Shown one piece after another: positions 18,250 to 64,000 of a DNA stretch of 64,000 nucleotides (positions are counted from its first letter, which is position 1; every line of letters begins with the position of its first letter). The translations under genes were made by a program, and so were the position numbers. The notes under the pieces were generated by a model. That model did no database searches. It was not told where the DNA came from and worked only from the letters and a program-made list of their open reading frames with translations. The stretch lies in NCBI GenBank assembly GCA_044892525.1, contig CM097888.1, positions 69,812,001 to 69,876,000 of the forward strand, read 5' to 3'. The stretch comes from Schmidtea polychroa. Taxonomy: Eukaryota.

Positions 18250-19237
18250 TTCATTACTATTATCATTTCAAAGCTATAAAACTGAATTACTAAAAATTAA
18301 TTTCCCAATCATATAATTAGTAATTAAAGAAAACAAAAACAGTTTATAGAATCCAATAAGTTTTAATTAATTATATTTGAAAATTGCATTGAGTAGAAAT
18401 AAAGTCGTGAAATGAATTTTTATTTTCCCTATTTAATCAACAAATAATTGCAGATATTGCTCCTAAATTGGTGTTGCGTTTTCCCTTGCATATCAATCAC
18501 TACATAACTTGCAGGAACCTCGCCCAATTCATAATTAACGAGGCGAGCATAACTAACCACTTGTTACCTTAGTTCAGTTGGGTTTTATGACGGTCATAAC
18601 TTTTATTATTCGTTGATTGAATATTTATATTCTTATCAGCAACCCCTCCTCGAGTAATTATTAATACTACCAGATTTTCAGATAATAAAACCACCATTGT
18701 GAAAATCGTCCAAATTTCCCGCTAATTATATTTCTAACACTTAACTGAGTTGATCAATAATTATTTATTGTTATTATTTTTTTATTTTAATACGCTAAAC
18801 TAATTTCCTCACTTGCCAATATCTGCGGTATGTTTATAGTCGTCAGTTGGCGTTTTTCCTTCATTCGACGATTCTGAAACCACACCTGCGGAAAAAATAA
18901 TTCAACAGTCTGAGTAATTTAATCAATATATTTGTCCTACTTTAATGGTCGATTCTTTTAATCCCAATTCTTTGGCCAATTCCGTTCTTTTTAATCTTGA
19001 TAAATATTTTTCCCTTCTGAATTCTTGTTCTAACCTATTAATTTGATTTCTTGAATAATTTGTTCTATAGCGTTTCATTTGATCACTATTCTCATAAAAA
19101 TCAATTGAATGATTATCGCCGTGTTCGTCACCGGATGTCGACTTATTCATTTCGCCTGTTGAAAGATTATTTATTAATACTGACGAAAAAATTTTAAAAA
19201 GTAGTAACTTACTCAAATGATTAGAATTCATTTGCAT
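14969..19237 (-). CDS. evx: Even-skipped/Evx homeodomain transcription factor, 4 coding exons, ~229 aa
   Basis: Exons 19237-19213, 19155-18941, 18885-18813 and 15345-14969 total 690 nt, with GT-AG introns of 57, 55 and ~3470 nt and consistent phases. Homeodomain KRYRTNYSRNQINRLEQEFRREKYLSRLKRTELAKELGLKESTIK|VWFQNRRMKEKRQ, followed by the Evx-like DPFLYSYLL motif and C-terminal FRPY (cf. Eve FKPY Groucho motif). The first exon and start codon are least certain. Confidence 0.9.
15432..15690. other. Assembly gap (259 N) inside evx intron 3
   Basis: Run of N. Confidence 1.
16790..17200 (+). mobile_element. Tc1/mariner-type transposase remnant in evx intron 3
   Basis: VQFLNE..GRLWIGK...*PPRSSDLTSSD...NLKSIF resembles the WPPRSPDLTPLD motif around the third catalytic residue. 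Heavily decayed. Confidence 0.55.
17410..17625. mobile_element. Tc2/pogo-like MITE (216 bp)
   Basis: TIR CCGTATTTTAGCGCATATAACGCGCGCG matched by CGCGCGCGTTATATGCGCTAAAATACGG. TA duplication at 17408-17409 and 17626-17627. Confidence 0.9.
18174..18250. repeat. (ATT)n microsatellite
   Basis: Read directly. Similar tracts at ~21980-22040, ~23008-23095, ~34866-34942 and ~38147-38222. Confidence 0.95.
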
Positions 19238-19291
19238 TGTAATTTGGAAACAGTTGGTAATAACAATTATTGATTGAAATATGTTTTTATC

Positions 19292-19335
19292 GGCCAATCA
19301 ACTGAGTACTGATTCGCCGATGAATTTGATTGGTT
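19292..19335 (-). promoter_or_regulatory. Possible CCAAT boxes upstream of evx
   Basis: GGCCAATCA at 19292-19300 and GATTGGTT at ~19328, 55-95 nt upstream of the inferred ATG. Position only. Confidence 0.3.
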
Positions 19336-46362: not shown

Positions 46363-47130
46363 AAGTCGCGTAAAACGAGGCATTAAAAAATACATGAAGA
46401 AAACAAAATGCATAGTAAATTAATTGAATAGTTTTCAAATGTACATACTTTTTAATATTTATTTAAATTATATTACACCTAATTCCGAAATTTAGTAACT
46501 TCTGTAATCTAAAAAAATCAATAAATTTATAGTATAGGAACACACAAACATACCTGTGTGTAGTGTTGCGGGTACACTACTCGGATGACCCTTTTCTAGT
46601 GCAGCTTTAGTCTAGAGGATGAATGCCCACCTTGATTTCGCCCATCATTTATTTGGTCATCGCCGAGCGGGACCCGTACATAACCTACACTCCAGCATAG
46701 CACCCGTGAATTGCTTCACGTTGGAACTGTGCTATGCCGGCGAGACGCCAGTAAGCAGGTGAGCCAGCTCCTTCGGACTACTCCTTACTGAGGCCTCGAC
46801 TTCCCAACCCTGACTGCCGATAGAAGGACTTACGTCTACTCATTCCGTCGCCCCTCGCAATAATTCTAGCTGAGTTTACCAACTGACTAATGCTCCTCAT
46901 AATTTTATGACTCTCAATGCCATTTACCAATTTCAACTCAACTGTCTTAAGGTGAGCACAAAGAAAAAACGTATGCAGACAAAAATGGTTTATTATTAAG
47001 GTTATCACACAAATATATCTAACACCTATACAATAAAATTCCCGACAACAGGAAAAGAGACAAAGGTAAAAATGTTATCAGACAATGTTCGGGCCATTTC
47101 AGAGAACGAAGACTTTTTACGGAGAAATTC

Positions 47131-47880
47131 TCATTTCTCCCACTCCGAGTCTGCCAATAGATCTTCCAAATCGAAAAACTCAGAGGCATTTTCCTCCCAG
47201 GTAACACCAGCGGCGGAGATGATTCGCCCTGAGATCACTGATGCTAAATCGATTGCTGCAGGAGGGTTGATGACTTTGATTGGATGATCCGACGATCGCG
47301 GGTTCTGTTTGGCGGTTACGCGTTCCCGCTGTTTCTTTTTGCGTTCGGCTCTCGATAATTGCCGACGCTTTGGTTTCGATGCCGTTGGATTGGTCGGGGG
47401 TGCTGCGGAGGTGGATGCTATCGCAGGTAGCACGTTACTGGTTCCGGTAAAGATGATTTCTGGTTCTTTAGGTGAGAGCTCGGTCTCTACGCACCCATGG
47501 CAAGGCTTTCCGACTGGAGAAGAAGACCCGCCCGAGATATCATGATGCGCTGGGAAGAGATTACCGGCTTCATTACTTGGGATCTTCGCGATCTTCCTTG
47601 TAATTGCTGCCTGGACGTATAATTTGTGCAGCGCCTCCGACTGCTCTTTTATCAGGCTCCTCTGCGCCCGACTCTCGGAAATCAACGCGTCTCTACAGTG
47701 CTCGCTTCGGTGCAGCTTCTTCTGAGCCTCCTTCATCTGGGTGGGACTGAACCATGTCCCCTCTAACTCATCTATCTTTCTTTTGTGCTTTCCGATCTGG
47801 GCCTGGAGCTCCTTGATAATTGAATTCTTGTCGGAGCAAGAAAAACAAGGTCGAAGAACGGTCTTGGAATTTGGCAACAT
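47131..47880 (-). CDS. 249-aa accessory protein: CxxC, coiled coil, CxxC, basic NLS-like patch, acidic-aromatic tail
   Basis: Intact ORF preceded by a strong acceptor TTATTCTCATTTTCCATTTTTTCCACAG, 8 nt before ATG. No family recognised. Confidence 0.6.
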   Translation of the reverse strand: MLPNSKTVLRPCFSCSDKNSIIKELQAQIGKHKRKIDELEGTWFSPTQMKEAQKKLHRSEHCRDALISESRAQRSLIKEQSEALHKLYVQAAITRKIAKIPSNEAGNLFPAHHDISGGSSSPVGKPCHGCVETELSPKEPEIIFTGTSNVLPAIASTSAAPPTNPTASKPKRRQLSRAERKKKQRERVTAKQNPRSSDHPIKVINPPAAIDLASVISGRIISAAGVTWEENASEFFDLEDLLADSEWEK

Positions 47881-50800
47881 TTGAGTGACTGTGGAAAAAA
47901 TGGAAAATGAGAATAATTAAATCGACGTGAGTGTCACCATCTAACCACATTCCGACTTTACTGATCATAGACAAAGATATGGGTTTACTAGTCAAGACAA
48001 GTTCTACTGTACGATGGATCCTCATACCTTTTGGATCTTTAATTGTAAGAGGATAAATCGATCAAACCAAATTTCGTACAAGGAAAGGAAGGTATTACCA
48101 TTTGTGAGAGAAATTCTAGGTCGATGAAAATGATTATTTAGTTAATCCGCTTGCAATCATTATCTCACGTTTACTGAGAGTCGAATTAAATTGTTGACTT
48201 TTCCCCCCGAACGAGTGATTTTGATGAGTGCATCATATACTGGGGTCGAGTGACTATCTATGGAAAAAGGGGTCCATAATGTCCGTTGATCAGTTCCTAC
48301 CGGATAAACGGAAAGTTATTTAATTTTTTAATTATTTATTCATTCTCTCTAATTACTCACATATGTGTTTTACCTGGTTTAAATAATATTCGATATTAAT
48401 ACTAATGATAATTATGTCAAAAATTGAAATAATTTCTGTGCCATTCATGCTAAGATAATAAAGAGAGAATAATCATAATTATGATCGGGTTTGGCATTAA
48501 AAATTATTGTCTTTATGATAACCGAGCACGGTATCAATGTGAGCTAGAAGCCGACCATTCCTGCTAGGTAGATAAGGAAATGTCAGCCCGGTGGTTGACT
48601 ATTAATCCGGAGCGGTGAAATCCGATACCTGTCGGTAGTTTAATTAGTTAATAGAAATTCCATCTGGTATGTTCAGTCTGATTTTACATGAGTAGGGACG
48701 GGTGTGACTTTACCCACTGCGCTTGGCTACTGTGTATGTCTGCAACTGGTGACGCATGCAAGGTGCGCTTTCACACACTTAATTATGCTACAAATGTATG
48801 TGTTCAATGTTTGCATGATGGCATTTCTCAGAATTTTATCTACCGCGAAATCGCTCACAGTTCTACTGCATATGATGATGATTTACTAATTCTCACCGGA
48901 TTATTGGAAAAATTATAATTATCTGTATTGCAAATGTTGGATATAGCTTGCTCCAAGGGTGGATTTTTCGTCTTTAATTCCTCAAGCCTAGTTTATCAAT
49001 CTACTCTCTAAGTGCTGGAGGATTTTTTCTATCTCTGCTGGATTGCCAACCTCATGTAATACTGGAATTTTGTATTTAACAAGATTATCGGCTAACTTGA
49101 AGAAATATATTTTCTTGGTTCGAATTGGTTGCATTTTTCATTGTTAAATTAGTTGATGCCAATAGTTTATGTAATTAGGATAATTAATTGTATGTAAATT
49201 CTTTTATATATAATTCTAAAAATTTATGATAGAGAATCATTTTATGTAATTTAAACGTTCATTTGGAACAAACTCGTTTTATGCAATTCTGAATCACTTT
49301 TTGGATTAAATCATTTTACATGGTTCTACCATTTATTCACAAGCAGTCATTTCGAGTAATCCTAATACTTATCTGAAGCCATCTACTTTGAACTCCCTTG
49401 CAACTATGTCTTTAAGAGAACTTTTAGATGAACGGAATAACAGTTCAGAAGGTCATAGGCTAAAAATTAGTCGGAACAGATTCTGAGTGAAAAATATGAA
49501 CCTCGAAGATATGTCACAGATAGCCTCACTAAGGTTTGAACAATTCTTGACGCACAACTTACATTGATGATGGAGAAAATTTTCTTAGCAAAAACGACAT
49601 TCAAAAACGATAGTGTGACACCCTCAATCACTGCGCGAATACATCAAAATTCTCCGATTCCCTTATTACATATCTTTGTTTTCAATCACTACATGACTAT
49701 CAATTTTCTGCCACCATTTACCTATAGATTTTAGTCGCACCTTCAGCAATTGGACCCGTGAAGAAGCCTTCACATTTCGGCCCAATCTAGCTGCGTGATT
49801 GAAATACCCTATGTCCACCGGTGGAGCTCCCGAAGGCACCTCACACCATGACATAGAGTATCTCAACGCCACGTTTCTCGCAAAATTGAATAGTCTCCAA
49901 TAATAATTCATAAAAATTGATTCGTAAAAGATCAATAATTCTTAACGAGCAAATCATTTATTATTAAGCAAATTATTAATTTAAATAAAGCATTCTAAAA
50001 TCAAACGAAAAGAAAAACCATTTTTCAAATTAAAAATATAATTAAACTATACGCATTACTTAAAAATTCAAAATAAGCAATCAAAAATCCTTATCGAATG
50101 ATTGATACTAGTATGGGCTGAGTCGAAAAGGGTACTATGTCAAATCAGTTAATGCTTGAATATCGTCTAGTTCTGTAAAAATCTCTTGAATCTTGGAATT
50201 GTCCTCGTGAGTTATCGTGCGTTAGTTGCTGGAGTTCTGTTCTGTCGTAGAATAGATTTACCTATTGAGGTGGTTTGATTAACAGTAGTTGTTATGTTTT
50301 TAATGCCTGCTTATATATTAATTTTTTGTTTGCGCGGACCAATTAGAATTGAGTACCGCTTAATTTTATTAATTTAATTTATTTTCCTTGTTTTTGAGTT
50401 ATTTCTTCTTATTTTCTTTATTAAAATTATGTTTTTATTTATTTTCCTTAATTTTCTTATTATTTACTATATTTTACGTTGTTTTCCGCCATTCTATTGT
50501 CCTATTTTAATTTTTTCTCATCTTTATATTTTTTGTTTTAATTCCTATTTTCTAATTATTGTTTTTCTTATGTTTTATTCTATTTTATTTGTCAATTTAT
50601 TTGTTTTTATTTTTTATTTTATTTTAGTTAAGTTTGCCCTAATTTCCCAACTACCCTTCGACTCAGCCCAACAAATCACTCGGGGACCCATCAAAATTGC
50701 GTCCCGCAATTGCATAGTTATCTTACTTCATGCATTCATAAAAAGGATATATCGAAACAATTATACTACAATAACAAAAACAATTTTATTCTAAGATATA

Positions 50801-50906
50801 GGTCAAAACAAGACCAAGCAAGTATCACTTAAGGTGATAGTTTGTATATACAATAAAAGTTTCTACATATGATAACACCAATGTTTGAGTTAGAGTCTAT
50901 GAACTG

Positions 50907-51566
50907 CTAACCATTTGATGCTTCTGCTGACGGTTGTTGGTTGGTTTGGGTATTGGTGTTGAGATAGGTCTGATTGTTAGAATTCGGCTGGATTGGTTGG
51001 TTACTCGGGATTCGAGGTCGGAATGGGGTTGGGTTAAGATTTGTCAGTGGCACTTCTTGAGGATTTCTGTTCGAGATTACTCTTATTGATGTCGAGATTC
51101 TGCATCTATTTCTAACTTCGTAGATCTTCATGAGTATTGGTAGACATAGGAGGAGGGTTTCTGCGATCACCACATATATGAGATAATGGGTGTCATTGAT
51201 TTCGGGAGGTGTTTTTGGTTTTTCTACAAGATTTTCAAAATTCTCTTGTTGCATTTGTTGTTCCAACTGGTCGAATTGTTGAATTTGTTCGAGGATTTGT
51301 TTGTTTATCATTTTACAAATGGGATTCTTTTTACACATTGTTTGGATGTTGTTGATGTGTGATCGGGTTGATTGAATGGTTTGGATGATATGGATTTTTA
51401 CTGTCATAGGGTATGTGCATTGGCCGGATTCTTGTTTAGGTTCTTGATTTTGATTTCGGTAATCTCGTACGATTTTCGGTTGGGCGTTTACTTGTTTGTT
51501 CTCCATCAGAATCATCAATACCGTTATTGTTATCATCATCTCGCCTCGCATGATACTATTATACAT
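50907..51566 (-). CDS. Predicted type I membrane protein (signal peptide, small ectodomain with Cys, one TM, Pro/Gln/Asn-rich tail)
   Basis: Hydrophobic MMITITVLMILM...VNA/QP, MCKKNPIC, TM YLIYVVIAETLLLCLPILM. Start could be 51551 or 51539. Confidence 0.7.
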   Translation of the reverse strand: MYNSIMRGEMMITITVLMILMENKQVNAQPKIVRDYRNQNQEPKQESGQCTYPMTVKIHIIQTIQSTRSHINNIQTMCKKNPICKMINKQILEQIQQFDQLEQQMQQENFENLVEKPKTPPEINDTHYLIYVVIAETLLLCLPILMKIYEVRNRCRISTSIRVISNRNPQEVPLTNLNPTPFRPRIPSNQPIQPNSNNQTYLNTNTQTNQQPSAEASNG

Positions 51567-51607: not shown

Positions 51608-52372
51608 TTAATGATTCTGGTTTGGGTTATTTTCGGCGATTCTCATCAGGGTGGATTCCGCTTTAATAACTCTGTGTCTTAACTCGGGCAGCATTTCCAA
51701 CTGTCTGTTCTTTTCACGGGCCTCCCTTTTCATGTGCCTTATCTCCTTTTTCAGCCTTCTAATTTCTTCCCGTTTTTTGTCGAGGTTCCTTTTTAGTTCG
51801 ATTTGTAGGAAATCTTGTTCGTTTTCCTGCGAAAGGTTTCGTTGTTGTTGTTGTTGTTGTTGTTTTCTCTCGATCTCTTGGTATTTGCGAATCCATTTCT
51901 TCATTTCCTCACTTTCTCGTTGTTTTTCCTCCAATTGTCGATTTAATTTATTTATAGTTATTTGGTGTTCTTTCGCCTTGGTTTTCCAATAATCCTGGAT
52001 TACTTCTTCTGCCTTGAAGCTTGCCCTCTCTTGCCATAGTTCCTCTGCAATCTTTTCCCAGTTTCTTCCTCGTGTTCGTTGTTCTTGCAACCATTCATTC
52101 TTCTCTTCCGCTTCCCTCTTTATTTCTCCTAACACTTCGCACTCCTTCTTTAGTATTTTAATCATTTTTCGGTCTTCTATATATTTGTTTATTAGTCGCT
52201 CGTTTTCGTCCTTCTCTTCCCGTAACTTGGCCTTTAACGTTTGTGTTTCTGTTGTTTCTGCCTCAATCTCTCCCTCTTCTACGTCGCTCGTAATTTCTAT
52301 TATTTCCTCGATTTTCATATCTGTAATATGTACAGTTAATGGTGCGCTATAGTGCGACTTATACATATACAT
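51608..52372 (-). CDS. Coiled-coil accessory protein (E/K/R/Q-rich)
   Basis: Intact 254-codon ORF with heptad-like charged composition. Likely start 52318 (MKIEE). Confidence 0.7.
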   Translation of the reverse strand: MYMYKSHYSAPLTVHITDMKIEEIIEITSDVEEGEIEAETTETQTLKAKLREEKDENERLINKYIEDRKMIKILKKECEVLGEIKREAEEKNEWLQEQRTRGRNWEKIAEELWQERASFKAEEVIQDYWKTKAKEHQITINKLNRQLEEKQRESEEMKKWIRKYQEIERKQQQQQQQRNLSQENEQDFLQIELKRNLDKKREEIRRLKKEIRHMKREAREKNRQLEMLPELRHRVIKAESTLMRIAENNPNQNH

Positions 52373-52503
52373 TTATATAAAATTTTAATAGTTCGGGTTA
52401 CAGTCCCTTGAATACTTTTACAATACTTTAATTTTTTTTTTTTTTTTTTTTTTTTTGTTTGGGATATACGTCCCGATTTTTGTCTTTATCTTTTTATTCA
52501 CCC

Positions 52504-53559
52504 TTATACGAAGGTTTCCTCCTGTCCCACATAACCTTCGTCACTATCGACCGCTGGATGCAACTGTATCGCAATAGGGTCATAGGGTAGGTAATATTGG
52601 GGGATTTGAGCTCTCAATTCATTAACTTCATCTCTTAGAGCTCGAGTGATATTCAGCTCTTCGTCGAGCAGATAAGTGAGATACCTTGTCTCTTCGTCTT
52701 TCGCCTCTACTTGTCTATCTAAGGCCTTGATTTTCTCGTCGCCCTTCCATTTTTCAATTTCTATTTCCAAGTTTTTGATATTTTCGGTATACATTTTCCT
52801 CTCGTTTTCTAATTTTCTGTTTTTTCCCGCTAGGACCATGTTTCTTTGTTCTAACGATCCTTGTAGTCCATTAAGGTCTCTTTTCATCTCTTCGACCTGA
52901 TTTACTAATTCCACAACCCGTCCTGCTTGCTGGGTTATCATCTCTTCCATTGCAGCATTCTCGTGCTCTCTTATGTCGCATTTTATTGCCAAATGTCGTT
53001 CAAACTCCATAGCCTTCATCTGCCATGTTTGGCTTCGGGCGGCGACCTTTTTCAACCGTTTCAGTTCTTCCTTTATTATTAAATTTTCCTCCCATTTACC
53101 CTGTTCGCTCTCATATCCGAGTCTCATGGGCAATTCTTTCATCTCTTTTTTCATTTCATTGCTTTGTCTTTTCCATTTTCTCGCTTCTGCCACTAAGTGC
53201 ATCATTTTCCTTCCTTCTATTTGCTTTTCCGCTTCGCGCTTGGTGTTCTCATCGGTAAGTCTCTTTCTCGCTTCCTGCACTAGCTGCTTTAAGTAGTGGC
53301 TGTGCGCTTCTTGGCGGGTATTTTCTAGTGACGCCCATTTTGATGCTCTTTTGCATGCTTCTGCTTCCGCTCTTAAGTTGTGTATTAACCATTGGTATTG
53401 ACTATTCTCATCCTCTCTAGCTTCTTCGATGTGATTTCGGGTGAGATTAGTTAGTTGGAACATTACTTTGTTCCATTTTTTGTTATGTTCTCGGGGAATT
53501 TGTGTCTTGTTGACATTGGTTGGGACTATCGCAGTTTCGGTTAGTTTCTCTTGTGTCAT
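52504..53559 (-). CDS. Coiled-coil accessory protein, 351 aa
   Basis: Intact ORF, long charged helical segments, acidic C-terminus (DSDEGY). Confidence 0.75.
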   Translation of the reverse strand: MTQEKLTETAIVPTNVNKTQIPREHNKKWNKVMFQLTNLTRNHIEEAREDENSQYQWLIHNLRAEAEACKRASKWASLENTRQEAHSHYLKQLVQEARKRLTDENTKREAEKQIEGRKMMHLVAEARKWKRQSNEMKKEMKELPMRLGYESEQGKWEENLIIKEELKRLKKVAARSQTWQMKAMEFERHLAIKCDIREHENAAMEEMITQQAGRVVELVNQVEEMKRDLNGLQGSLEQRNMVLAGKNRKLENERKMYTENIKNLEIEIEKWKGDEKIKALDRQVEAKDEETRYLTYLLDEELNITRALRDEVNELRAQIPQYYLPYDPIAIQLHPAVDSDEGYVGQEETFV

Positions 53560-53753
53560 CTCTAAATCATAGACATCGATTAAGCTTTTTATTATGAAAA
53601 AGGAATTTATTCATTATTTGCTGTTTCTTTGGAAATTTTCGCATCATTTTTGGGTTTACGTATTTAGGGTTTTTCATACTATTATTATATAATATTTTAT
53701 TGGTTATATACACCGATATATACAGATTATTATATACAACATTATTCGATCGT

Positions 53754-55142
53754 TTACTCCGTTCTGCCCTTCTCCTCTTTCCTTACGGTCATCTTGATAT
53801 ACACCGTGCCATTTCTTGCCATATCTTCTACTTTTTGTTGTAGGATGAACGTAGGTGCTCCTGTTGCTGATCCTTCTTCTTCCGTAGGTCTCTGGTAACA
53901 CATTTGGTTTCCAGTTGTCTTGAAGCTTTGTTCGTGGATGTTTCGGTCATTCATTAGTGCAATATCGATTTTCGCCTGGAACGGCCACTCTATTATTTCG
54001 TCGTATTCTCCTTTACATAACAGAAAGAAAATCGAAAAGTGTGTGTCTAATCCGGTTCCGTCCCCGTTGGGATATATCTTCATTTTCATTTTGTACCCAT
54101 TTTTCCAAGAATGGAATGCAGGACTTGTTATTCTTGTCTCTTCTCCGGTTTTTGCTTTTCGTATTCTTTCCTTTACTCCCGTAATCTTCCATATGTAGGG
54201 TGCTGTTGGGGTTATCTCATTTAGATTTATTTCCCGTATTTTCTGATGTAGCTCCTTGGCCTGATTATTACTGATTTCTATTCGGTTTATTTGCATCTTT
54301 ATGTTTGCTCGGGCTTCTTCGAACGCTTCCCTTTCTTCTAGTAGTTCTTTGACTAACACTTTCAACGATGCTATCTCTATCTCCATTTGTTTTACTTTCT
54401 CCTCGCTTTCTTGTAACGCAGTCGACCACATTTCTGCGTGGGTTGAAGCATTTTCTACTAAATGATGTGGTAACTCCCCTCGGTGTAGTAGTTTCTGACA
54501 ACCCCATTTGCCTAGTACGCATGTCATTCTTTTCTTTTCACATTCCCTTAGATGCTGTGCCACCTTCATTATTTCCCCTTGGTTACATCCGTTTGGGCAT
54601 TCCCCACTGAACTCTGCACATACTCTCTCCTCTTGGACATTGTGATGTTTGAGGGTGAGATTTTTCCACGTATCTATTTCTCCACAGTGTTCACATCTTT
54701 CTAATCTCTCCTCACACTGCCTTTGATGCTCTTTTTCTTCGCTTGCTCGAATGGTTTTATGGCACCTTTCACACTGGCCAATTCTGTACATACATTCTCC
54801 CATATGTTGTACTACCTTCCATATTACTCCTTTCCATTCGCATGGGGCATTTTTGCATCCCAGGTTGGTGTTTAACATGTCTTTCACTGCGGCTTTATCC
54901 TCGTTAGTGTCTTCTAAACTCGATATTAGTGTCTCTTTACACACCGGGCACCTCTGTGGTCTATTCTTTATTGCTTCACTGATACATTCTTTACATACTC
55001 TGCATCCACATTGGGTTTGGTGGGGTTCTTTTAGTAACTTTTCACAGATTCCGCACATAACATGTTTGTGTATTCTGATCGTTGTAGATTTTCGGACTTG
55101 CTCGACAATCTCTCTGAACTCTTCTCTTTGTCGTTTATCCAT
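53754..55142 (-). CDS. TRAF-family protein (RING, TRAF Zn fingers, coiled coil, MATH/TRAF-C), intronless, 462 aa
   Basis: RING CGICEKLLKEPHQTQCGCRVCKEC...CPVC; Zn fingers CKNAPCEWKG..H...C and CEHC...H; MATH PYIWKITG...SPAFHSWKNGYKMKMKIYPNGDGTGLDTHFSIFFLLCKGEYDEIIEWPF. Confidence 0.95.
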   Translation of the reverse strand: MDKRQREEFREIVEQVRKSTTIRIHKHVMCGICEKLLKEPHQTQCGCRVCKECISEAIKNRPQRCPVCKETLISSLEDTNEDKAAVKDMLNTNLGCKNAPCEWKGVIWKVVQHMGECMYRIGQCERCHKTIRASEEKEHQRQCEERLERCEHCGEIDTWKNLTLKHHNVQEERVCAEFSGECPNGCNQGEIMKVAQHLRECEKKRMTCVLGKWGCQKLLHRGELPHHLVENASTHAEMWSTALQESEEKVKQMEIEIASLKVLVKELLEEREAFEEARANIKMQINRIEISNNQAKELHQKIREINLNEITPTAPYIWKITGVKERIRKAKTGEETRITSPAFHSWKNGYKMKMKIYPNGDGTGLDTHFSIFFLLCKGEYDEIIEWPFQAKIDIALMNDRNIHEQSFKTTGNQMCYQRPTEEEGSATGAPTFILQQKVEDMARNGTVYIKMTVRKEEKGRTE

Positions 55143-55227: not shown

Positions 55228-55587
55228 TTAGGGTTCGGAAGAGTCGGCTTCGTGTCCGCTCTCCTCTCTATTCATTAACCATTCCGACCAGTCTTCTATT
55301 TCTGTCTGTTCTGCTTCCTCCATCATTCTGTTTAGTTCAATTTCCTGTCTACGGCTATATTGGGTTATCCTCTCTATCTCTCTTTGCATTTGTTCGATTT
55401 TCAACCTCTGGTCTTCAATTATCTTCAAATAACTAAATCCTCTATTCATACTCTCGATTAGGTTTCTGTGCATCGTCAATCCTTGTTCTTGCAAATTGGA
55501 CACTAATTGTGCTAATACGGCACATTGTTGCTTCCATAATTCTTCAGTTACTGTATTGTGGTTCATTTCGTTATTTCCTTGATCCAT
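55228..55587 (-). CDS. Small coiled-coil accessory protein (~119 aa)
   Basis: The track ORF starts at TTG 55611; first ATG is 55587 (MDQGNN). Acidic tail resembles that of the 351-aa ORF (EADSSEP vs DSDEG). Confidence 0.6.
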   Translation of the reverse strand: MDQGNNEMNHNTVTEELWKQQCAVLAQLVSNLQEQGLTMHRNLIESMNRGFSYLKIIEDQRLKIEQMQREIERITQYSRRQEIELNRMMEEAEQTEIEDWSEWLMNREESGHEADSSEP

Positions 55588-55880
55588 TCTTAATTTATAT
55601 ACACTTTTCAACTCTTATTTAAAGTTAATTTTATTTTATGGTTCCCGTTATTGTATAATATTAATACCGCGCTTATATAAAGATATAGTACTGTTATATA
55701 CATAAGATATACTTACTTTTTACAATTATATACAGTCATATTCCTTTCTATATACGTGAGTTTGGAGGGCGCTGAGCGTTCCAGGCCTCCACCCACTGTT
55801 CCTGTTTGATAACACTTGGTCGTTTCACTCGATGTTGGAAATTTCTGATTCGGGTCATCTCTAATTCTCCGCGATGTCGT

Positions 55881-58800
55881 TTATCTTTGATTATTTTTAT
55901 TGTCGCCCCCCGTTATGATTAGGAAGGCCCCTGTTATTATTATCCCACTGATCCACATCATCTGCTTCACGCTTATATTCTCTGGTTTCTCCTTGTTCGT
56001 TAATGTTGATATCGCTTCTATACCTTTCTCGTTTCCTCTTTTGCCATTTCCTTTCATCATTTCCCGTATTCTTGCTATTTCCTCGTTCATACCCTCCTTT
56101 GCCATCTTTTGTATTTTTTCCATCTCTTCCTCCGAAACATAGTTGTCCTGAGCTTCCTCGCCGGTTTTCTTGTGCTTTCCTCCTTCGTTCTTTTCGTCGT
56201 GGTTTTTTCTTTTCTTTCCTCTTTTCCCTGGGTATCGTCGGCATTCTCTTTTTGATTCATTCCTCCAGATACAAACCGTGTATTCTTTCGGCGGCTGCTG
56301 CTGCGTCACATATTGATGGCATCTCTCACCTGGTCCTAATCTTGAAATACAGACTTTGTGCTCTCTTCTAGGTTGGAGCTGCGTTATTACTATTTCACCA
56401 CCTTTTCCTAGGTGTACCTCTTTTCCTTTAACGTTCGTTATTCTCTTCCCGTCTCGATTTCGGTATGCTTCTTGTATTCTTACTTCTGTTATTGGTTCTG
56501 TGTCCTCATTTATCAGTACTAGTTTCTGATACGCTCTAGACATGCATCTTCCTAGTATGCACCTTTCCTTTAAGTCCCATTCTTCCTTTAAATCCCACTG
56601 CTGCTCTTGTGCTTGCTTTTTCTTTTCTTGTTTTAGTTCATCCTCTTTGCTATCTTGATTCTCCGCTTCTTTGGTTTCTTTTATCGTTCTCGTCCCTCCA
56701 TGAGCTGTTACTAACTCTATCATGGTAAGCATAATTATCATTAATATCATATTTGTCTCTATTTCTTTGTTAGTGAAAGGTAGGCATACCCTCTGTTTTC
56801 CATTATTCGGTTTTTCCTCCTCTTTGGTCTTGGTTCCCGGGCTGTTTCCCTCTCTTTTCGTATCCAAATCCTTGTTTTCCGGTTTATCCTCTTCCGGTTC
56901 TCTTTTCCCTTTATCCTCTTTTCGGCCTTTTCCGTCATTGTCATCGTGTTTATCTCCCCCGCTGTCGTTTAAAATGTCGTCCTCGACATTTATATCGTTC
57001 AATAATCTGCGATATGCTGTTAGCACTCTGTTTCTTGCTAATTTTGCTTCGAATTCAAACTCTTTTCTACCCGTTGCAGCATGTCTCTTTCTATTCCATT
57101 CTTTAACTAACTCTCTCAATTGCATACGACGATGTTTCCCAATTCGTTGTTGCTCGTTCTGATTTTGCGTGAATTTTAGGTCTTCTCTATTTAATACTAT
57201 TAAAATAATTTTAGGCGTCCCCCCTTTAGTTAGGGTATTCTTTACCATCGCATTTTCTCCGTTTTCGTAGAATTCGTTTACATTTATCGCATATTTATTA
57301 TTTTGTGGTACCTTCCATGTTAATAATAATTTCATTGCTTCTAGATTTTTCCGTACCGTATTCCATTGAAATTGAGATGTGTTTTTGCACATATTCTCAA
57401 CTTCTTCTTTTGTCGCATTTTTGCAAATAAATCTGATCATTTCTAAGTTTGGCTGTATGGTTGCCCAGTCCAATGTGGAGTTCCCTTCGTTTGATTTTTC
57501 GTCTAGTCTCGATCCTGATTGATGTAAGATGTGGAGTGTTTTTGGGTGTATTTTCGTTATAGCTGCATACATCATGGCGGTTTCACCTTGTTCATTTTTC
57601 GTGTTGGTTTCCTCACCCATCTCCCCAAGGATTCTCATGATCGTTATTGCTCTATTCTCTTTTGCAGCTAGTATTGCTTGTTGTAGAGGTGTTCTGGAAT
57701 CCTTTGTTACCATCGTAAATGCTCGAGGCAAGAAGGTTTTGATTTTCCCGATATCTAAACCCGTGGTTTGATCTCTTGCGTATGTGTGTACGGCTTTTAT
57801 TATTTTGGACAATATTATTTCGTCTGGCAGCTCTAGCATTTCCTCAAAGAACACTTCTTTTGCTTTGCGTATTATTGCCTCTTGATCTATACTCATTGAT
57901 TTGGTTTCGATGACGTTGTTTGTGACCGTTTGGTTCGTTGTTGACTTTGATTCCCTTGATTTCTCATACCTTATTTTCGTTTTCTTTCCGTTTGGATTAT
58001 TGATTCGTTCCTCTGCTGTAAGTATTTGGATAATATCCAGGTAATTCTCGCGGATGTTATTCATTGTGTCCATCATATATAACACACTTACCGTTTCCCA
58101 ATATTTATTTCGTACTTGGTTAGTAAATTGGAATATTGATTTTTCGAATGTGTCGATTCGCTTTTTTGCTAACTGTTCATCTTTATGATTTGTGAATTTT
58201 ATCCCTCGTTCTAGTAATTGATTCGGAATTTCGAATAAATGATGTCCTTTCATAGCTTCTCTCATCAGCGTGTTCTCTCCTCTCGTGAACGCTTCGTTTA
58301 CGTTGATCATATAATCGTTTTGAATTGGATTTCTCCATGTAATTAATATTCCGGTAATTGTTGTCAGTTTCTCTTTGATCGCTGTTAATAATCCATCATA
58401 CATGTTTCCGACTTCTCGATTGTCCTCATATGATAGTAGTTCCATCAACGACGTGAACGCCTCGGTACTTTTCCCTTCGATAGCATGATGTAGAGCGTTT
58501 TTCCGCTCGTGGTCTTGTGTAGTTATTTTCGATCCAGTATCGAGTAATGCGGTTATAATGTCTTTTGTTTTGCCTCTGTTTGCGGCTATCATTAATGGTG
58601 TGTAACCTTGGTTGTTTGTTTGTTCTGTTGATCGCTTGCAGTCGTGAAATGCTTCTATTGTTTCTAGTATTTGCTCGTTGTTACCTACTTTCATGAGTTT
58701 GTGTAATGGTGTGTCTCCGTAATGATCTGTTATTGTAAATAATATTGGCCATTGGCTTTTGACTACTCGCAATAATGGGTGTGTCCTTTCTCTATTTGCA

Positions 58801-61800
58801 TAGTTCTCGATCATCGTCAATAATCCTCCTAATATTTCGAAATCTAATCGATCTTTTGCCCATCCAGGTATTTTAATTTTTACCTCTTTTACAATCTTTT
58901 CCGCTTCTGATGGTTGGATACCCAATCGTCCGGTGATCGGTTCTGCGAGTTGTTGCATCATGTTCATTCTGTAGGTTTGCGAACGTGTGGTTAATGTACG
59001 GCCCTCTGGTTGACTAGTGGCTGTTTTTGGAATTGATTTGCATCGTGCTACGTTTACGTATATTGGCCTGGTAAATGGGTTATTTACCAATTTCACTCTT
59101 ACATTGGTTTCGCCTACGAATAAGATCTCATATGGTCCTTTTCCGTTGCGTTGTAACTTTTTTGTGGTTCCTGGAATTAATTCCGGGGTTTCTATCATTA
59201 CCCAATCACCTGTTTGAAACGTATGTTGCTTCACGTTTTTCTTTCGATCGTGTAAATCTTTATAACTTTCCTGGTAGAACTTGATATTTAATCCCGCAGT
59301 TTCCCAAATCTCCTGCATTCTTTCCTTGAATTTCGTAACATAATCGTCGATCTCCATATACTGCGATATCGGTGGTTGGTATTCCAGGTCCATTGGCATA
59401 TTACATTCTCTTCCGTACATTAATTTGAATGGGCTCATTTTCGTTGATGCGTGAATCGACATTCTGTACGCCATAAGACATAGGTTTATATATTCGTCCC
59501 AATCTCGTTGGTGACGGTCAACGTAGTTTGATAACATTTGTATAAGTGTTCCATTAAATCTTTCCGTCATCCCATTGGTTTGGGGGTGGTATGGAGATGT
59601 TCTTAGTTTTGCTATTTTGAAGTAATTTGTTACTTCGCTCATTATCTCACTCATAAAATTAGTTCCCTGATCGGTTAATATCTGTTTTGGTGTTCCATAT
59701 CGGCAACATATCTCTTCTACCAGAATTTTTGCGATTGTTTTAGCTTTTTGGTCTGGCATCGCGAATGCTTCTGGAAATTTCGTAAGAAAGTCGGTAATCA
59801 CTAAAATATAAACGTTTCCTCTATCCGATTCCGGTAATGGACCAACTACGTCCATTGATATCATCGTCATCGGCTCTATTGGTACGGGCATTGGCGTTAA
59901 AGGCGCTTTCCATTTTGATCCAGTATTTTTCCTGGTCGCACAAGTTAGGCAATTTTTTACCCATTCGGTTACATCTTCAGTTAACGTAGGCCAAAAATAT
60001 TTCTGTTTCATTCTTGCTAACGTCTTTTTCGATGACATATGTCCTCCCAATCTCCCATCGTGATATTGCGTTAGTAACTCTTTTCGTCGGTTTTCCGGTA
60101 TACACATTAATCGTTTTTCCCCATCCATTATCAGCAACCAATCTTTCTCTATAATATATCGGTGTCGGTGTTTATCCATATGTTCTTTTAATTTTTGGTC
60201 TTTCGCATATACATCTGTCTTTCCGGTTTTTACATAATCGATAATTTGTTTTAATTCCGCGTCCTCTTGTTGGTTCTTTCGCAATTGACAGAAATCTAGG
60301 TCTTCTGCTACCATTAGGCATATGCGTTGCATTTCTGAATCCACCAAATCTGGAAAAATAAATCTTGACATACAATCGGCGTTGGCATTTGCTCTTCCCG
60401 CTTTGAATTTTATAAATGGGGAGTATTCTTGCAATTGCATGGCCCATCTCATCAGTCTACTGGACGCTTCTTTATGTTGCCCTAACCACACTAATGGTTG
60501 ATGATCTGTGGTTATACATATCTCATGTCCCCATAGTAAATATCGGAAGTGTTTGATAGCTTGTATTATAGCCAATGCTTCTCGTTCTGTTACCGAATAG
60601 TTCTTTTCGTGCTTTTTGAATGTTCGACTGTAATACCCGATTACTCTCTCTTTTCCTTCATCGTCTAATTGTCCCAGAATCGCGCCTGCCGCGTACCCGC
60701 TTGCATCCGTTGCCAATAGAAATGGCTTCTTAAAATCTGGGTGTACTAGGATAGGTGCTTCGATTAGTTTATCTCTCAGCGTTTCAAACGCCTCTTGTTG
60801 TTCCTTCCCCCAAATGAACGAAATGTCCTTCTTTACTAATTCCTGGATTGGTTTTGCAATTTCTGCATAATTTTTTATAAATTTGCGATAGTATCCGCAT
60901 AATCCTAGAAATTCCTGAACTTGGGTGACAGTTTTCGGTGCTGGACATGTTTTTATTTTCTCAATGTTTCTTGGATCTGGCTCCTTTCCTTTAGCTGACA
61001 CTATGTGTCCTAAAAACGTGACTTTTTCCTTTGCCCAATCGCATTTTGATGGTTTGAGTTTGAGTTTCCACTGTCTTAATCTAATAAATACGTTTCGGAT
61101 ATCTTCCAGATGTTGTTCAAATGTCGCTGAATAGATTAGTAAATCATCAATATATACCATACATTGTTTGATTCCATGAGTGACAAAGTTCATACACCGT
61201 TGAAATGATGCTGGTGCGTTGGTCAGTCCGAATAGCATTTTCCTGAATTGATATAGATCTCGTCCCAACGTGAAAGCTGTTTTCTCTTTGTCCTCATCTT
61301 TGACTTTAATCTGCCAGTATCCACTTTTTAGATCTAAAGAAGTAAAATATGCTGCCCCTTGCAACATCAATAACATCTCATTGATGTCCGGCAATGGATA
61401 GGTATCTCTCTTGGTTACTGCGTTTAACTTCCGATAATCGATACAGAATCGTTGGGTGCCATCTTTCTTTTTTACCATGACCACTGGGAATTGCCAGGGT
61501 GAGCAACTTGGTTCGATTACTTTTGCGTCTAGCATCTTTTGTACTTCTGCTTCGGCTATTTCTTTTTGCATTTCTGCTAGCTTGTATGGTCTTAATGCAA
61601 TTGGAGTTTCATCTATGAGGGGTATTGCATGTAGGGTAACATCGCATGTACCCAAATCTAAATCTGAGATGGCGAATATATCTTTATATTCTACCAACAA
61701 TCGGTGCAATTTTTTCTTTTCATCATTCGTCAACAACATACTATCTATTGTCCATAATTCATCATCTTTGATCATCTCGTTGGTCACTTTCGGTAATTCT

Positions 61801-64000
61801 ATGTCCATCATTGGGGTCAATCTTCCCAATTTTTCGTTCTCATAAATGATTTTGTCTTCCTCTTCGAAATTCGTGATGTTGAGCGGTATCACTCCTTCTT
61901 GGTTTATTGTGATTATTTCCCTTGCGAGTGGTAACTCTCGTCGCTTTTCAAATGACTTGCTTGGTTCAAAGATAACTTCTCCTTCCATACCCGTATCCAC
62001 TTTTATCTGACAAATCATCTGCGATTTTGCTGGTACTATTATTTTTTCTGGACATCTGATTACTGCATTCATTTTGCATATTCTACCGGTTTTGTCTTTT
62101 AAACACATGGTGGTTAAGTCAATTACGACTTCTTTTAACAATTCTGGCATCAAATCCGTTCCGATTATGCATGGTACGCTAAGTTTTGGTATTACTGCCA
62201 AATACGTTTCAATTTCGTTGTCCTGGTATCTCAAAGTAGTCCACCATCTTCCGACCACGTCCACTGTTTCTTTACTACATGCTATGATGTGAATTGTTGT
62301 TGATTCGATATCTTTCCAGTGTTTACTGGGGATTTGATTAATCGCTATCGCTGATACATTAGCTCCGGTGTCTATCATAGCATTGGTTTCTTTACCATTG
62401 ATTTGAATCATAACTGTTACTGCTGGACCTCCAGGTAGACTCATTGCTGCTATTGTTCTTACGTCATCTGCTTGATCTACACTTTTGGTACGTCGTGTTG
62501 GCATATAATGCATACCGGGTTGACTCGGTAATTGCGGATACATATTTTGTGTCATGGTCAAAGCTGCTTGTGGTCCCACGATATCCGGTGGTATGTAGCT
62601 TCCATTGGCGATCCAGGTATTTGTCTTTTCCTTTTCCCAATATGGTGCCGTTTCCATTGGTTTTTCGTTTGGGTTTCTGTTTGGATATAGACATTTATCG
62701 TTCCCGTTATCGTCGTCGTCACTATCGCTGTTAGATGATTGGCTTCTAAATCGGTTCAAGAATTTTGGCTTATTCTTTTTCAATTGTCGTCTTGTTGCTT
62801 CATCGTACATTACTTTCCGGAATCGTCTGCCTACTTCTTCGTCGGTTCCTTTAATCTTTGTTAATATTTTAATCAATTGCTTTATCCGATGAATGTCTTT
62901 TGAGTGACCATGTAATACCATGGTTTTAGCTAAAAATGGTAGAAAGCCTACTATCATTTTCCAATTTACTTTCTTTTCTCGCTTGTATATATCAAAACAC
63001 GCTAACATTTGTGTTAGTTTTACTCTGACTATCTGAATTATGAGTATGATCCCTAATATCCCGGCCATCATTTGTCCAAAAACTAAGAATCTTCCCCACA
63101 TTGCTTTCATCATGTTCGATGTGGCTTGTTGAAAATGGTCTGGTGATAGTAGCAGCTCGTAATTCGGGCCTGATTGATAATTTGTTCCCCCCGTTATTGT
63201 AACCATATTTGACAAAATGGATTCTCGTCTGGCTGGGAAGAGTACGTTAAGTCGTGCTGTTTCTAGATCTTCTGGGGAATACATACCACCGTTTGACACG
63301 TCTATAGGTTTGAAATCCAGCTCTGTGGCGAGTTCTATTAATCCAAATTTCTTGGGCTCCTCGGATATGGTTTTTCCCGGTAACATCATCCATTTCCCAT
63401 CGGGTCTTTCATACAAAGGTCCGTATGCATTAGAACAGTTAAAGAGATTTGGGTAGAAACCCACTGGATTCATAATTCTAGTGACTGGTTGGACGAATCG
63501 ATTTTGTCCTTTATAACGGATTTCTAATTCATTTGCACATCTCTTTTCGGGTAGTATGGATTTTTCTGGCATTCGTGCATACGTCTTGGTACACTGGTAT
63601 GTGTACATCACTTCTCCTACCATTCTACCAAAATGTCCATCTGGTAATGGGAGTGATGGCATTGTGTTATCTGGGTGTGTTATCGCAATAGCTAACTTGG
63701 TTTTCAGTATTTCTTTATTCAATGAACAATCGTTTTGTATCAGATCGTAATATACTTTTTGCAAGGTCGTTTGTCCACGGTGAAATAGAAAATCCATTTT
63801 ATTATTTGCATATAAGTATAGTTTTACGTCCTCCGTTGCTATCTTTCCCACTGCTCTATCGATTATTTGTCTCGACATATAGATACCAGCGTAATTGGTT
63901 TTATATACTATACTGTCACATTTGGTGGTTTCTTTCTCTTTGATAAATCTCATACCTAGATCTGGATCGTCTGTGATTAATGCTGTTGGTGTCTTCTGCG
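55881..64000 (-). CDS. Polyprotein >2700 aa: chuvirus-like glycoprotein-TM-protease-RT-RNase H-integrase-2x ankyrin module-membrane tail; 5' end outside window
   Basis: The frame stays open upstream of ATG 63953 (QKTPTALITDDPDLG). G-like GEVMYTYQC..CANEL..FVQPVTRI..C..GKW; TM 63027-63089; DTG 62364-62372; YIDD 61143-61154; ATDASG ~60700; HHCC ~59937-60070; DVVGP, TDQG, ERFN integrase core; GPY ~59135; ankyrins DTPLH, GYTPLMIAA, KNALHHA. Confidence 0.95.
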   Translation of the reverse strand, partial: QKTPTALITDDPDLGMRFIKEKETTKCDSIVYKTNYAGIYMSRQIIDRAVGKIATEDVKLYLYANNKMDFLFHRGQTTLQKVYYDLIQNDCSLNKEILKTKLAIAITHPDNTMPSLPLPDGHFGRMVGEVMYTYQCTKTYARMPEKSILPEKRCANELEIRYKGQNRFVQPVTRIMNPVGFYPNLFNCSNAYGPLYERPDGKWMMLPGKTISEEPKKFGLIELATELDFKPIDVSNGGMYSPEDLETARLNVLFPARRESILSNMVTITGGTNYQSGPNYELLLSPDHFQQATSNMMKAMWGRFLVFGQMMAGILGIILIIQIVRVKLTQMLACFDIYKREKKVNWKMIVGFLPFLAKTMVLHGHSKDIHRIKQLIKILTKIKGTDEEVGRRFRKVMYDEATRRQLKKNKPKFLNRFRSQSSNSDSDDDDNGNDKCLYPNRNPNEKPMETAPYWEKEKTNTWIANGSYIPPDIVGPQAALTMTQNMYPQLPSQPGMHYMPTRRTKSVDQADDVRTIAAMSLPGGPAVTVMIQINGKETNAMIDTGANVSAIAINQIPSKHWKDIESTTIHIIACSKETVDVVGRWWTTLRYQDNEIETYLAVIPKLSVPCIIGTDLMPELLKEVVIDLTTMCLKDKTGRICKMNAVIRCPEKIIVPAKSQMICQIKVDTGMEGEVIFEPSKSFEKRRELPLAREIITINQEGVIPLNITNFEEEDKIIYENEKLGRLTPMMDIELPKVTNEMIKDDELWTIDSMLLTNDEKKKLHRLLVEYKDIFAISDLDLGTCDVTLHAIPLIDETPIALRPYKLAEMQKEIAEAEVQKMLDAKVIEPSCSPWQFPVVMVKKKDGTQRFCIDYRKLNAVTKRDTYPLPDINEMLLMLQGAAYFTSLDLKSGYWQIKVKDEDKEKTAFTLGRDLYQFRKMLFGLTNAPASFQRCMNFVTHGIKQCMVYIDDLLIYSATFEQHLEDIRNVFIRLRQWKLKLKPSKCDWAKEKVTFLGHIVSAKGKEPDPRNIEKIKTCPAPKTVTQVQEFLGLCGYYRKFIKNYAEIAKPIQELVKKDISFIWGKEQQEAFETLRDKLIEAPILVHPDFKKPFLLATDASGYAAGAILGQLDDEGKERVIGYYSRTFKKHEKNYSVTEREALAIIQAIKHFRYLLWGHEICITTDHQPLVWLGQHKEASSRLMRWAMQLQEYSPFIKFKAGRANANADCMSRFIFPDLVDSEMQRICLMVAEDLDFCQLRKNQQEDAELKQIIDYVKTGKTDVYAKDQKLKEHMDKHRHRYIIEKDWLLIMDGEKRLMCIPENRRKELLTQYHDGRLGGHMSSKKTLARMKQKYFWPTLTEDVTEWVKNCLTCATRKNTGSKWKAPLTPMPVPIEPMTMISMDVVGPLPESDRGNVYILVITDFLTKFPEAFAMPDQKAKTIAKILVEEICCRYGTPKQILTDQGTNFMSEIMSEVTNYFKIAKLRTSPYHPQTNGMTERFNGTLIQMLSNYVDRHQRDWDEYINLCLMAYRMSIHASTKMSPFKLMYGRECNMPMDLEYQPPISQYMEIDDYVTKFKERMQEIWETAGLNIKFYQESYKDLHDRKKNVKQHTFQTGDWVMIETPELIPGTTKKLQRNGKGPYEILFVGETNVRVKLVNNPFTRPIYVNVARCKSIPKTATSQPEGRTLTTRSQTYRMNMMQQLAEPITGRLGIQPSEAEKIVKEVKIKIPGWAKDRLDFEILGGLLTMIENYANRERTHPLLRVVKSQWPILFTITDHYGDTPLHKLMKVGNNEQILETIEAFHDCKRSTEQTNNQGYTPLMIAANRGKTKDIITALLDTGSKITTQDHERKNALHHAIEGKSTEAFTSLMELLSYEDNREVGNMYDGLLTAIKEKLTTITGILITWRNPIQNDYMINVNEAFTRGENTLMREAMKGHHLFEIPNQLLERGIKFTNHKDEQLAKKRIDTFEKSIFQFTNQVRNKYWETVSVLYMMDTMNNIRENYLDIIQILTAEERINNPNGKKTKIRYEKSRESKSTTNQTVTNNVIETKSMSIDQEAIIRKAKEVFFEEMLELPDEIILSKIIKAVHTYARDQTTGLDIGKIKTFLPRAFTMVTKDSRTPLQQAILAAKENRAITIMRILGEMGEETNTKNEQGETAMMYAAITKIHPKTLHILHQSGSRLDEKSNEGNSTLDWATIQPNLEMIRFICKNATKEEVENMCKNTSQFQWNTVRKNLEAMKLLLTWKVPQNNKYAINVNEFYENGENAMVKNTLTKGGTPKIILIVLNREDLKFTQNQNEQQRIGKHRRMQLRELVKEWNRKRHAATGRKEFEFEAKLARNRVLTAYRRLLNDINVEDDILNDSGGDKHDDNDGKGRKEDKGKREPEEDKPENKDLDTKREGNSPGTKTKEEEKPNNGKQRVCLPFTNKEIETNMILMIIMLTMIELVTAHGGTRTIKETKEAENQDSKEDELKQEKKKQAQEQQWDLKEEWDLKERCILGRCMSRAYQKLVLINEDTEPITEVRIQEAYRNRDGKRITNVKGKEVHLGKGGEIVITQLQPRREHKVCISRLGPGERCHQYVTQQQPPKEYTVCIWRNESKRECRRYPGKRGKKRKNHDEKNEGGKHKKTGEEAQDNYVSEEEMEKIQKMAKEGMNEEIARIREMMKGNGKRGNEKGIEAISTLTNKEKPENISVKQMMWISGIIITGAFLIITGGDNKNNQR

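Follow-up and report, generated by a model that had tools for sequence, protein, structure and literature searches.

Introduction

Planarian genomes harbour giant Gypsy-like long terminal repeat (LTR) elements, Burro and GYPSM1, whose architecture has been set out by Arkhipova and Yushenova, summarising Jurka (2007) and Grohme et al. (2018) (PMC6431247). In Burro elements an envelope (env) region lies in frame between gag and pol and matches the glycoproteins of mononegaviruses, and the cargo reported for Burro/GYPSM1 comprises AIR1 (RING), Smc (coiled coil), MATH_TRAF_C, BIR, ankyrin and BCL2-like modules (PMC6431247). MATH_TRAF_C has been reported in several Burro families and in two planarian genera, and meddling with apoptosis and ubiquitination by Burro elements has already been proposed (PMC6431247). 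Here we describe a stretch of 64,000 nucleotides from the planarian Schmidtea polychroa (GenBank assembly GCA_044892525.1, contig CM097888.1, positions 69,812,001 to 69,876,000 of the forward strand; hereafter the window), in which an open reading frame (ORF) for a complete TRAF protein follows a Gypsy-type polyprotein. We assign a probability of roughly 0.8 to the reading that a giant Burro-type element of Ty3/Gypsy affiliation, with the character of an endogenous retrovirus and resident in a planarian-type genome, carries this ORF as an accessory gene.

Some of the biology that surrounds such elements is already known. BURRO1 is transcribed, is enriched in the intestine and is repressed by SMEDWI-2 (PMC8532177). 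There are many TRAF genes in planarians (PMC6109357), and 99-282 MATH/TRAF transcripts have been reported for S. mediterranea. TRAF homologues are wound-induced and functionally important in these animals (PMC7586133). The TRAF encoded by ISKNV ORF111L is known to bind TRADD and to drive caspase-8 apoptosis (PMC3352826).

A RING, an Smc-like coiled coil and a MATH_TRAF_C domain are together what a whole TRAF should yield in a domain search, and thus the occurrence of TRAF in Burro elements has in effect been reported before. The original prediction for this locus, which was made from the letters of the window, consequently overstated its novelty, since RING/Smc/MATH_TRAF_C cargo of Burro/GYPSM1 was already published (PMC6431247). 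What we consider to be new is modest. A complete stand-alone TRAF is found downstream of pol, whereas the earlier cases are inside or upstream of ORF1. To this we add the strong divergence of the protein from known TRAFs and the compositional evidence for its long residence in the element.

Results

A complete TRAF encoded by a single reading frame

The TRAF ORF is a single uninterrupted and intronless frame of 462 codons (Table 1). It lies in a stop-free run of 478 codons, compared with a maximum of 283 codons in 200 composition-preserving shuffles, and the probability of obtaining 462 open codons by base composition alone is approximately 2e-15. Therefore, this is no chance reading frame.

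Domain assignments were obtained by several routes. Amino acids 30-68 match the Pfam RING model zf-C3HC4 with 22.2 bits (curated cutoff 21), and amino acids 316-453 correspond to a MATH/TRAF-C domain (Pfam TRAF-mep_MATH, E-value 1.8e-25). When the PDB was searched by sequence, amino acids 22-159 matched structures of the RING and zinc fingers of TRAF6 and TRAF5 (E-value 2e-14), and the TRAF domains of human TRAF1, TRAF2 and TRAF3 were matched with E-values of about 3e-27. In an alignment with 64 homologues, the columns that hardly vary are those of the zinc ligands in the RING, of the C..C..H..C ligands in each of five zinc fingers and of the MATH core, and the window TRAF carries the family residue at every one of them. 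All eight zinc-ligand columns of the RING are filled, with Cys rather than His as the fourth ligand. The same Cys-for-His exchange (CGC) is found in all four of the planarian-type TRAFs aligned at this column, which are two Dendrocoelum lacteum proteins and two UniParc entries, and the fish TRAF examined (n = 1) has CGH.

The AlphaFold2 model built on the 64-homologue alignment has a mean predicted local distance difference test score (pLDDT) of 92.7. It comprises a RING, five beta-beta-alpha fingers, one helix spanning amino acids 232-305 and a beta-sandwich spanning amino acids 316-455. The best matches of this model in a Foldseek comparison with the PDB are TRAF domains, including those of TRAF1, TRAF2 and TRAF3 at E-values of about 4e-18 and target TM-scores of 0.7-0.8. 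The claim that an intact four-part TRAF is encoded in one exon has thus held up well, as Pfam, the PDB matches, the ligand columns and the pLDDT all agree: the window ORF is a complete, structurally intact TRAF with a RING, five zinc fingers, a coiled coil and a MATH domain.

The polyprotein and its likeness to Burro elements

The polyprotein on the same strand has the domain order env-like glycoprotein, protease (PR), reverse transcriptase (RT), RNase H (RH), integrase (IN), ankyrin repeats and a hydrophobic C-terminal tail, of which the PR-RT-RH-IN portion is in the Ty3/Gypsy order. The C-terminal module of the integrase is at amino acids 1605-1642 of the polyprotein and gives a weak match to SH3_Tf2-1. 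The fusion glycoprotein, at amino acids 5-324, covers only positions 264-579 of the 653 in the profile, and so the N-terminal half of env must lie beyond the window. Its frame is still open at position 63998. Given the in-frame viral fusion glycoprotein, the predicted domains make the element look like an endogenous retrovirus and not just a plain Gypsy element. Its visible part amounts to about 13.1 kb of coding sequence plus a tail of up to 4.4 kb, with the window stopping inside env. The other LTR, gag, and the SUMO-like and BCL2-like modules would be outside the window. In Burro-type elements gag has CCHC knuckles and, like the SUMO-like and BCL2-like modules, precedes env, the LTRs are long and the whole element exceeds 30 kb.

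This arrangement agrees with that of Burro feature by feature apart from the points given below, with the likeness to Burro1-4/GYPSM1 being set by published architecture and not by sequence identity. Both have their pol domains in Ty3/Gypsy order, a mononegavirus-like glycoprotein that precedes PR in the same reading frame, and ankyrin repeats behind IN. Both also possess accessory ORFs and RING(AIR1)/Smc/MATH_TRAF_C modules, and both reside in an AT-rich genome of the planarian type. The position of env in frame with PR-RT-RH-IN is known for Burro, yet it is unusual. In Burro1, however, MATH_TRAF_C is located inside a 4873-aa ORF1 between gag and env, whereas the window has a separate TRAF ORF downstream of the pol-ankyrin region. 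A dUTPase and BIR have also been reported for Burro1, but neither was found in the visible part of the element. Specifically, amino acids 600-830, between PR and RT, gave no Pfam match at all, dUTPase included, at an E-value of 1 or better, and the 2690 amino acids of polyprotein that were seen include no BIR or BCL2 domain. The dUTPase and BIR are traits reported for certain Burro families, and membership of the group may not depend on them.

The Burro-like element from Dugesia (Girardia) tigrina is similar to the window in that its MATH_TRAF_C is in an accessory ORF and not in ORF1 (PMC6431247). That accessory ORF is upstream of ORF1, however, whereas the window TRAF is downstream and is the second of five. 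The D. tigrina example shows that the module shifts between a place in the polyprotein and an ORF of its own.

The TRAF gene belongs to the element

Five accessory ORFs are found downstream of the pol stop codon at 55881, all on the same strand and separated by gaps of 41-270 nt, with TRAF as the second. The strand of TRAF and the polyprotein is shared by all long open frames. From the pol stop to the TRAF start codon at 55142 there are 739 nt, in keeping with the 0.7 kb originally stated, and 384 nt of this gap are taken up by accessory ORF 1. With another ORF occupying the gap, an LTR could not be accommodated there.

Base composition leads to the same assignment. At third codon positions, the TRAF ORF has a GC content (GC3) of 0.40, with A at 0.45 (A3) and T at 0.15 (T3), and the polyprotein has values of 0.36-0.39 for GC3, 0.43-0.46 for A3 and 0.15-0.20 for T3. 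The hAT, piggyBac and Tc5-type ORFs of the window have GC3 values of 0.23-0.31 and T3 values of 0.27-0.37. A GC content of about 0.39 with a strong skew of A over T runs unbroken from position 64000 to about 50400, and the remainder of the window has a GC content of about 0.25-0.31. The shared strand, the spacing and the composition indicate that TRAF belongs to the element and has been resident long enough to adopt its composition. These same observations, namely one strand, short spacers, matching third positions and no LTR room, bear out the earlier proposal that the TRAF gene is inside a Gypsy-type retroelement.

We also considered that TRAF might be the upstream accessory ORF of a second, tandem element. 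This arrangement was rejected, given that there is no LTR room before the gene and no gag after it.

Relatives and probable origin of the window TRAF

Exact-sequence look-ups with TRAF and two neighbouring ORFs returned no record, and a word-index protein search with TRAF returned one match. An exhaustive HMMER search of 1.84 billion cluster representatives yielded 6043 TRAF-like proteins, none of which exceeds 40% identity to the window protein. The closest named TRAFs are TRAF-2, TRAF-4 and TRAF-5 of Dendrocoelum lacteum and TRAF-2-like A of Dugesia japonica, with 29-35% identity. The window protein resembles these cellular planarian TRAFs, its nearest named relatives, in being built of the same four parts and in having Cys for His in the RING. 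It differs from them by this low identity, and also by being intronless, element-like in composition and embedded in an element.

In a neighbour-joining tree, the window TRAF groups with the UniParc proteins P0005, P0018 and P0023, next to planarian clades, with weak support of 39-46%. P0018, P0023 and P0001 constitute a small family with 52-70% mutual identity and a common N-terminal start but without a recognisable MATH domain, which would suit decaying repeated copies. We infer from these sequence relationships that the window TRAF probably descended from a flatworm TRAF.

A further protein, P0010 (UniParc UPI00060351E8), has a Burro-like integrase C-terminal module (hhalign probability 97%, E-value 7e-11; hmmsearch E-value 5e-14) that is followed in frame by a complete TRAF. 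It may be a fusion of element and TRAF, or it may be a chimeric gene model, which is possible because its TRAF part is a well-conserved TRAF3-like sequence with 55-59% identity to vertebrate TRAF3 in the MATH domain. For this reason, we rejected P0010 as independent proof of element-borne TRAFs and take it as a hint only. The other 163 TRAF matches that were screened contain no pol-like sequence.

Was a TRAF mRNA captured?

The original prediction held that the element captured a TRAF mRNA. The intronless nature of the gene fits this proposal, but no poly(A) trace was found after the TRAF stop codon, and the sole footprint of such an event is behind accessory ORF 3. There, a block ending in 25 consecutive A residues (A25) has the appearance of a polyadenylated mRNA 3' end that was retro-copied and became fixed in the element (Table 1). 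Apart from A25, the window contains no run of at least 14 A residues, and 0.3 such runs would be expected. This footprint supports RNA-mediated uptake as a process that has taken place in the element, but it does so for the neighbouring ORF 3. Capture of a TRAF mRNA by the element is therefore best described as plausible from the sequence features available. Given the divergence of the protein (at most 40% identity to any relative) and its assimilated composition, any such capture should be ancient.

Related loci with an env-pol backbone

The comparison set consisted of 85 loci, which were four ENA contigs (L001-L004; ERZ25039515), 80 metagenome loci (L005-L084) and one IMG/VR locus. The closest pol relatives, on ENA and JGI metagenome contigs, are 42-54% identical and share the same env-PR-RT-RH-IN(-ankyrin) backbone, and tblastn revealed the Monjiviricetes fusion domain in seven related loci. 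Loci L001-L012 are close relatives in architecture, with env in frame with pol and, in some, ankyrin repeats. Gene calls divide the polyprotein into several genes in some of the related contigs. When TRAF and the other accessory ORFs were used as tblastn queries against L001-L084, only the env, IN-tail and ankyrin portions proved to be shared. A DNA_pol_B_2 gene is near the element in L001. Fragmented bacterial-type ABC-transporter genes are beside the element in L002, whose assembly may be chimeric.

Other accessory ORFs, spacers and the element tail

The accessory ORFs other than TRAF (Table 1) gave no Pfam match reaching the curated cutoff. At the preceding end of the array, a hydrophobic, transmembrane-like polyprotein tail is encoded at 55884-55960 (minus strand), a few residues before the stop codon.

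The spacers contain recurrent short motifs. TGTATATA occurs 16 times in the window compared with 6.1 occurrences expected, and seven of its ten minus-strand copies are in or beside the spacers that follow the stop codons of pol, TRAF and the last ORF. In addition to the cluster after TRAF (Table 1), TGTATATA-like motifs are present on the minus strand behind the pol stop (55596-55734) and behind the last ORF (50845-50852). AATAAA signals are also present in the spacers between ORFs. Judged by sequence, these features could be TATA-like internal promoters accompanied by poly(A) signals, or they could be sites for RNA-binding proteins. The downstream ORFs might be expressed from internal promoters or through RNAs that are subgenomic, spliced or trans-spliced, with the TGTATATA clusters and the AATAAA signals serving as hints only.

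The presumed non-coding tail possibly includes a polypurine region and a 3' LTR, of which the window contains no second copy. Shortly after accessory ORF 5, some 530 nt of extremely A-rich sequence are flanked by an inverted repeat that is exact over 13 nt (50115-50127 and 50657-50669) and extends to about 19-21 nt when flanking matches are counted. This block could have arisen as a small nested insertion, or it could form a long-range stem close to the polypurine region (fold z-score only -1.6). The tail also contains a 249-aa ORF (47131-47880, minus strand) that gave no Pfam or PDB match. Its GC content of 0.51 and GC3 of 0.56 set it apart from the element and from the host DNA alike. Located in the presumed LTR or tail region, it may be a foreign insert.

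The remainder of the window is a mosaic of transposase ORFs of the hAT, piggyBac (DDE_Tnp_1_7) and Tc5/pogo types together with a reverse-transcriptase fragment. The piggyBac and Tc5-type ORFs, like the AT-rich host context, are in line with a Schmidtea-like genome.

Table 1. Positions of the element's parts and of other features in the window
Feature	Position	Strand	Basis or remarks
Polyprotein ORF	55881..64000	minus	at least 2705 codons; still open at the window edge; visible part free of stops and frameshifts
Monjiviricetes (rhabdovirus-G-type) fusion glycoprotein, C-terminal half	62982..63941	minus	E 1.5e-41; in frame with PR
Retroviral aspartyl protease	62139..62414	minus	RVP, E 5e-10
Reverse transcriptase	60999..61475	minus	RVT_1, E 5e-34
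RNase H	60423..60812	minus	RT_RNaseH, E 4e-39
Integrase: zinc-binding domain, catalytic core, C-terminal module	59028..60101	minus	Integrase_H2C2, E 8e-21; rve, E 2e-12
Ankyrin repeats, two blocks after IN	57318..58733	minus	Ank_2, E 3.5e-17; about aa 1741-1851 and 2079-2212
Accessory ORF 1, small, coiled-coil-like	55228..55611	minus	127 aa from a TTG start; first ATG at 55587; no family match
Accessory ORF 2, TRAF gene	53754..55142	minus	462 aa; ATG start; stop codon included in the coordinates
TRAF RING	54939-55055	minus	Pfam, PDB sequence search, AlphaFold2 model
TRAF-type zinc fingers (n = 5)	54438-54857	minus	ligand columns, AlphaFold2 model
TRAF coiled coil	54228-54449	minus	long helix in AlphaFold2 model
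TRAF MATH/TRAF-C	53778-54197	minus	Pfam, PDB sequence search, AlphaFold2 model
Three TGTATATA motifs within 34 nt	53705..53738	minus	right after the TRAF stop; 146-179 nt upstream of ORF 3
Accessory ORF 3, coiled-coil-rich	52504..53559	minus	351 aa; no family or PDB match
Processed-mRNA-like 3' end	52432..52498	minus	AATAAA at 52493-52498 abutting the ORF 3 stop; A25 at 52432-52456, separated from it by 36 nt
Accessory ORF 4, coiled-coil-rich	51608..52372	minus	254 aa
Accessory ORF 5, hydrophobic segments	50907..51566	minus	219 aa; may be a small membrane protein, judging by its translation; no family match
Non-coding element tail	46550..50906	minus	lower bound uncertain, set solely by the GC drop near 46.5 kb
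Transposase/RT mosaic ORFs	9206-9856, 30542-31285, 39330-40217, 40397-41182, 12433-12897
Homeodomain-encoding exon (n = 1)	18923-19297

Discussion

Several results weigh against the assignment of the TRAF ORF to a Burro-type element. The zf-TRAF Pfam model had no match in the ORF at an E-value of 0.01 or better. LTRs sought as direct repeats within the window were not found, and, as the window ends inside env, both LTRs and the 5' part of the element are putative. No second copy of the element or of TRAF is present in the protein collections that were searched. Furthermore, tblastn with TRAF over the 84 loci L001-L084 (631 kb) uncovered no TRAF, and the downstream cargo of related loci includes an RNase_T-type exonuclease and a SUMO-like ORF. 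Because the related loci carry other ORFs and no TRAF, the accessory cargo is modular, and TRAF is lineage-specific and no universal part of the backbone.

It is important to weigh these points against other explanations for the locus. Planarians are rich in TRAF genes (PMC6109357), no LTR has been identified and the 3' end of the element has been set by composition alone, as would suit an ordinary intronless host gene or retrogene that is located beside a truncated retroelement and outside of it. We nevertheless judge this to be very improbable, since the 739-nt gap between pol and TRAF includes a 384-nt ORF of like composition, and since three further ORFs on the same strand, with A-rich and T-poor third positions, follow the TRAF gene. 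Moreover, the plateau of GC content and AT skew is continuous from 64000 to about 50400, and the other ORFs of the window are clearly different in composition. Equally hard to sustain is the proposal that the host has co-opted TRAF, and perhaps the neighbouring ORFs, as an immune or regeneration TRAF within the remnant of an element that is no longer mobile. The fully open polyprotein of at least 2705 codons speaks for a young or active element and not a fossil, and TRAF has neither introns nor a host-like composition. The importance of wound-induced TRAF homologues to planarians (PMC7586133) would be in line with such domestication, as would the link that P0010 makes between an integrase tail and a conserved TRAF3-like protein, but P0010 might be a chimeric gene model.

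The possibility that TRAF is neutral passenger DNA must also be considered. In that case, the gene would have been captured by chance, would be useless to the element and would be intact only through recent insertion. Cargo does vary among related elements, and P0018, P0023 and P0001 are without a recognisable MATH domain, as decaying copies would be. However, the window TRAF has kept every near-invariant ligand, the MATH core and a confidently predicted fold despite an identity of 40% or less to its relatives, and its composition is fully assimilated to that of the element. Likewise, the reports of MATH_TRAF_C in several Burro families and two planarian genera imply long retention. Given these findings, we regard a neutral passenger as unlikely. 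The reading that we prefer remains that TRAF is an accessory gene of a Burro-type element.

If TRAF is indeed such an accessory gene, the following course of events can be envisaged. A flatworm TRAF would have been taken up long ago, probably via an RNA intermediate, and would since have been retained by selection, because all zinc ligands and the MATH core are intact even though identity to known TRAFs is no higher than 40%. We propose that the protein probably serves as a modulator in the style of those used by viruses. Its coiled coil and MATH domain would join or compete with host TRAF trimers and with the tails of receptors or adaptors, and its RING would ubiquitinate the partners. Cells expressing the element would then have their TNFR/TLR-type signalling through NF-kB/JNK, and their cell-death signalling, biased. 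TRAF would act alongside the ankyrin repeats of its own element, and alongside BIR and BCL2-like modules such as related elements are reported to carry. Judged by established TRAF biology and by viral analogy, the likely function of TRAF is modulation of host TRAF, NF-kB or cell-death signalling. Its effect may be pro-survival, pro-death or that of a decoy.

Viruses provide a precedent for this type of function. The top matches of the TRAF model in the viral library used with Foldseek are the TRAFs of megalocytiviruses and Klosneuvirinae. The megalocytivirus ORF111L-type and Klosneuvirinae proteins likewise have a host-derived TRAF fold and an actual or presumed capacity to interfere with TNFR/TRADD/caspase signalling. 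In contrast to the window TRAF, they belong to large DNA viruses, share only 12-26% aligned identity with it and in several cases are only about 200-370 aa long. The resemblance, as we interpret this analogy, is therefore one of a way of working and not of family membership.

The current locus adds a variant arrangement and no new principle, as the core phenomenon is already documented in work of 2007, 2018 and 2019. It does, however, provide a clean and fully open case of a retrovirus-like element in which a complete gene for an innate-immunity adaptor stands together with ankyrin repeats and further accessory ORFs. As such, it would be a natural example of an invertebrate endogenous retrovirus that takes up and keeps host signalling genes.

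A broader proposal, raised in part by the original prediction and offered here tentatively and with more doubt than conviction, is that a sizeable share of the planarian TRAF/MATH expansion might be cargo that has been multiplied and dispersed by Burro-type endogenous retroviruses. Stand-alone TRAFs such as that of the window might then represent an evolving family of viral immunomodulators that exchanges with host paralogues. Two papers that address the planarian TRAF/MATH expansion (PMC6109357, PMC7586133) do so without consideration of transposon cargo, and some caution seems appropriate when gene-family counts are drawn from them. If the proposal is true, a sizeable share of the 99-282 TRAF/MATH transcripts would not be host genes.

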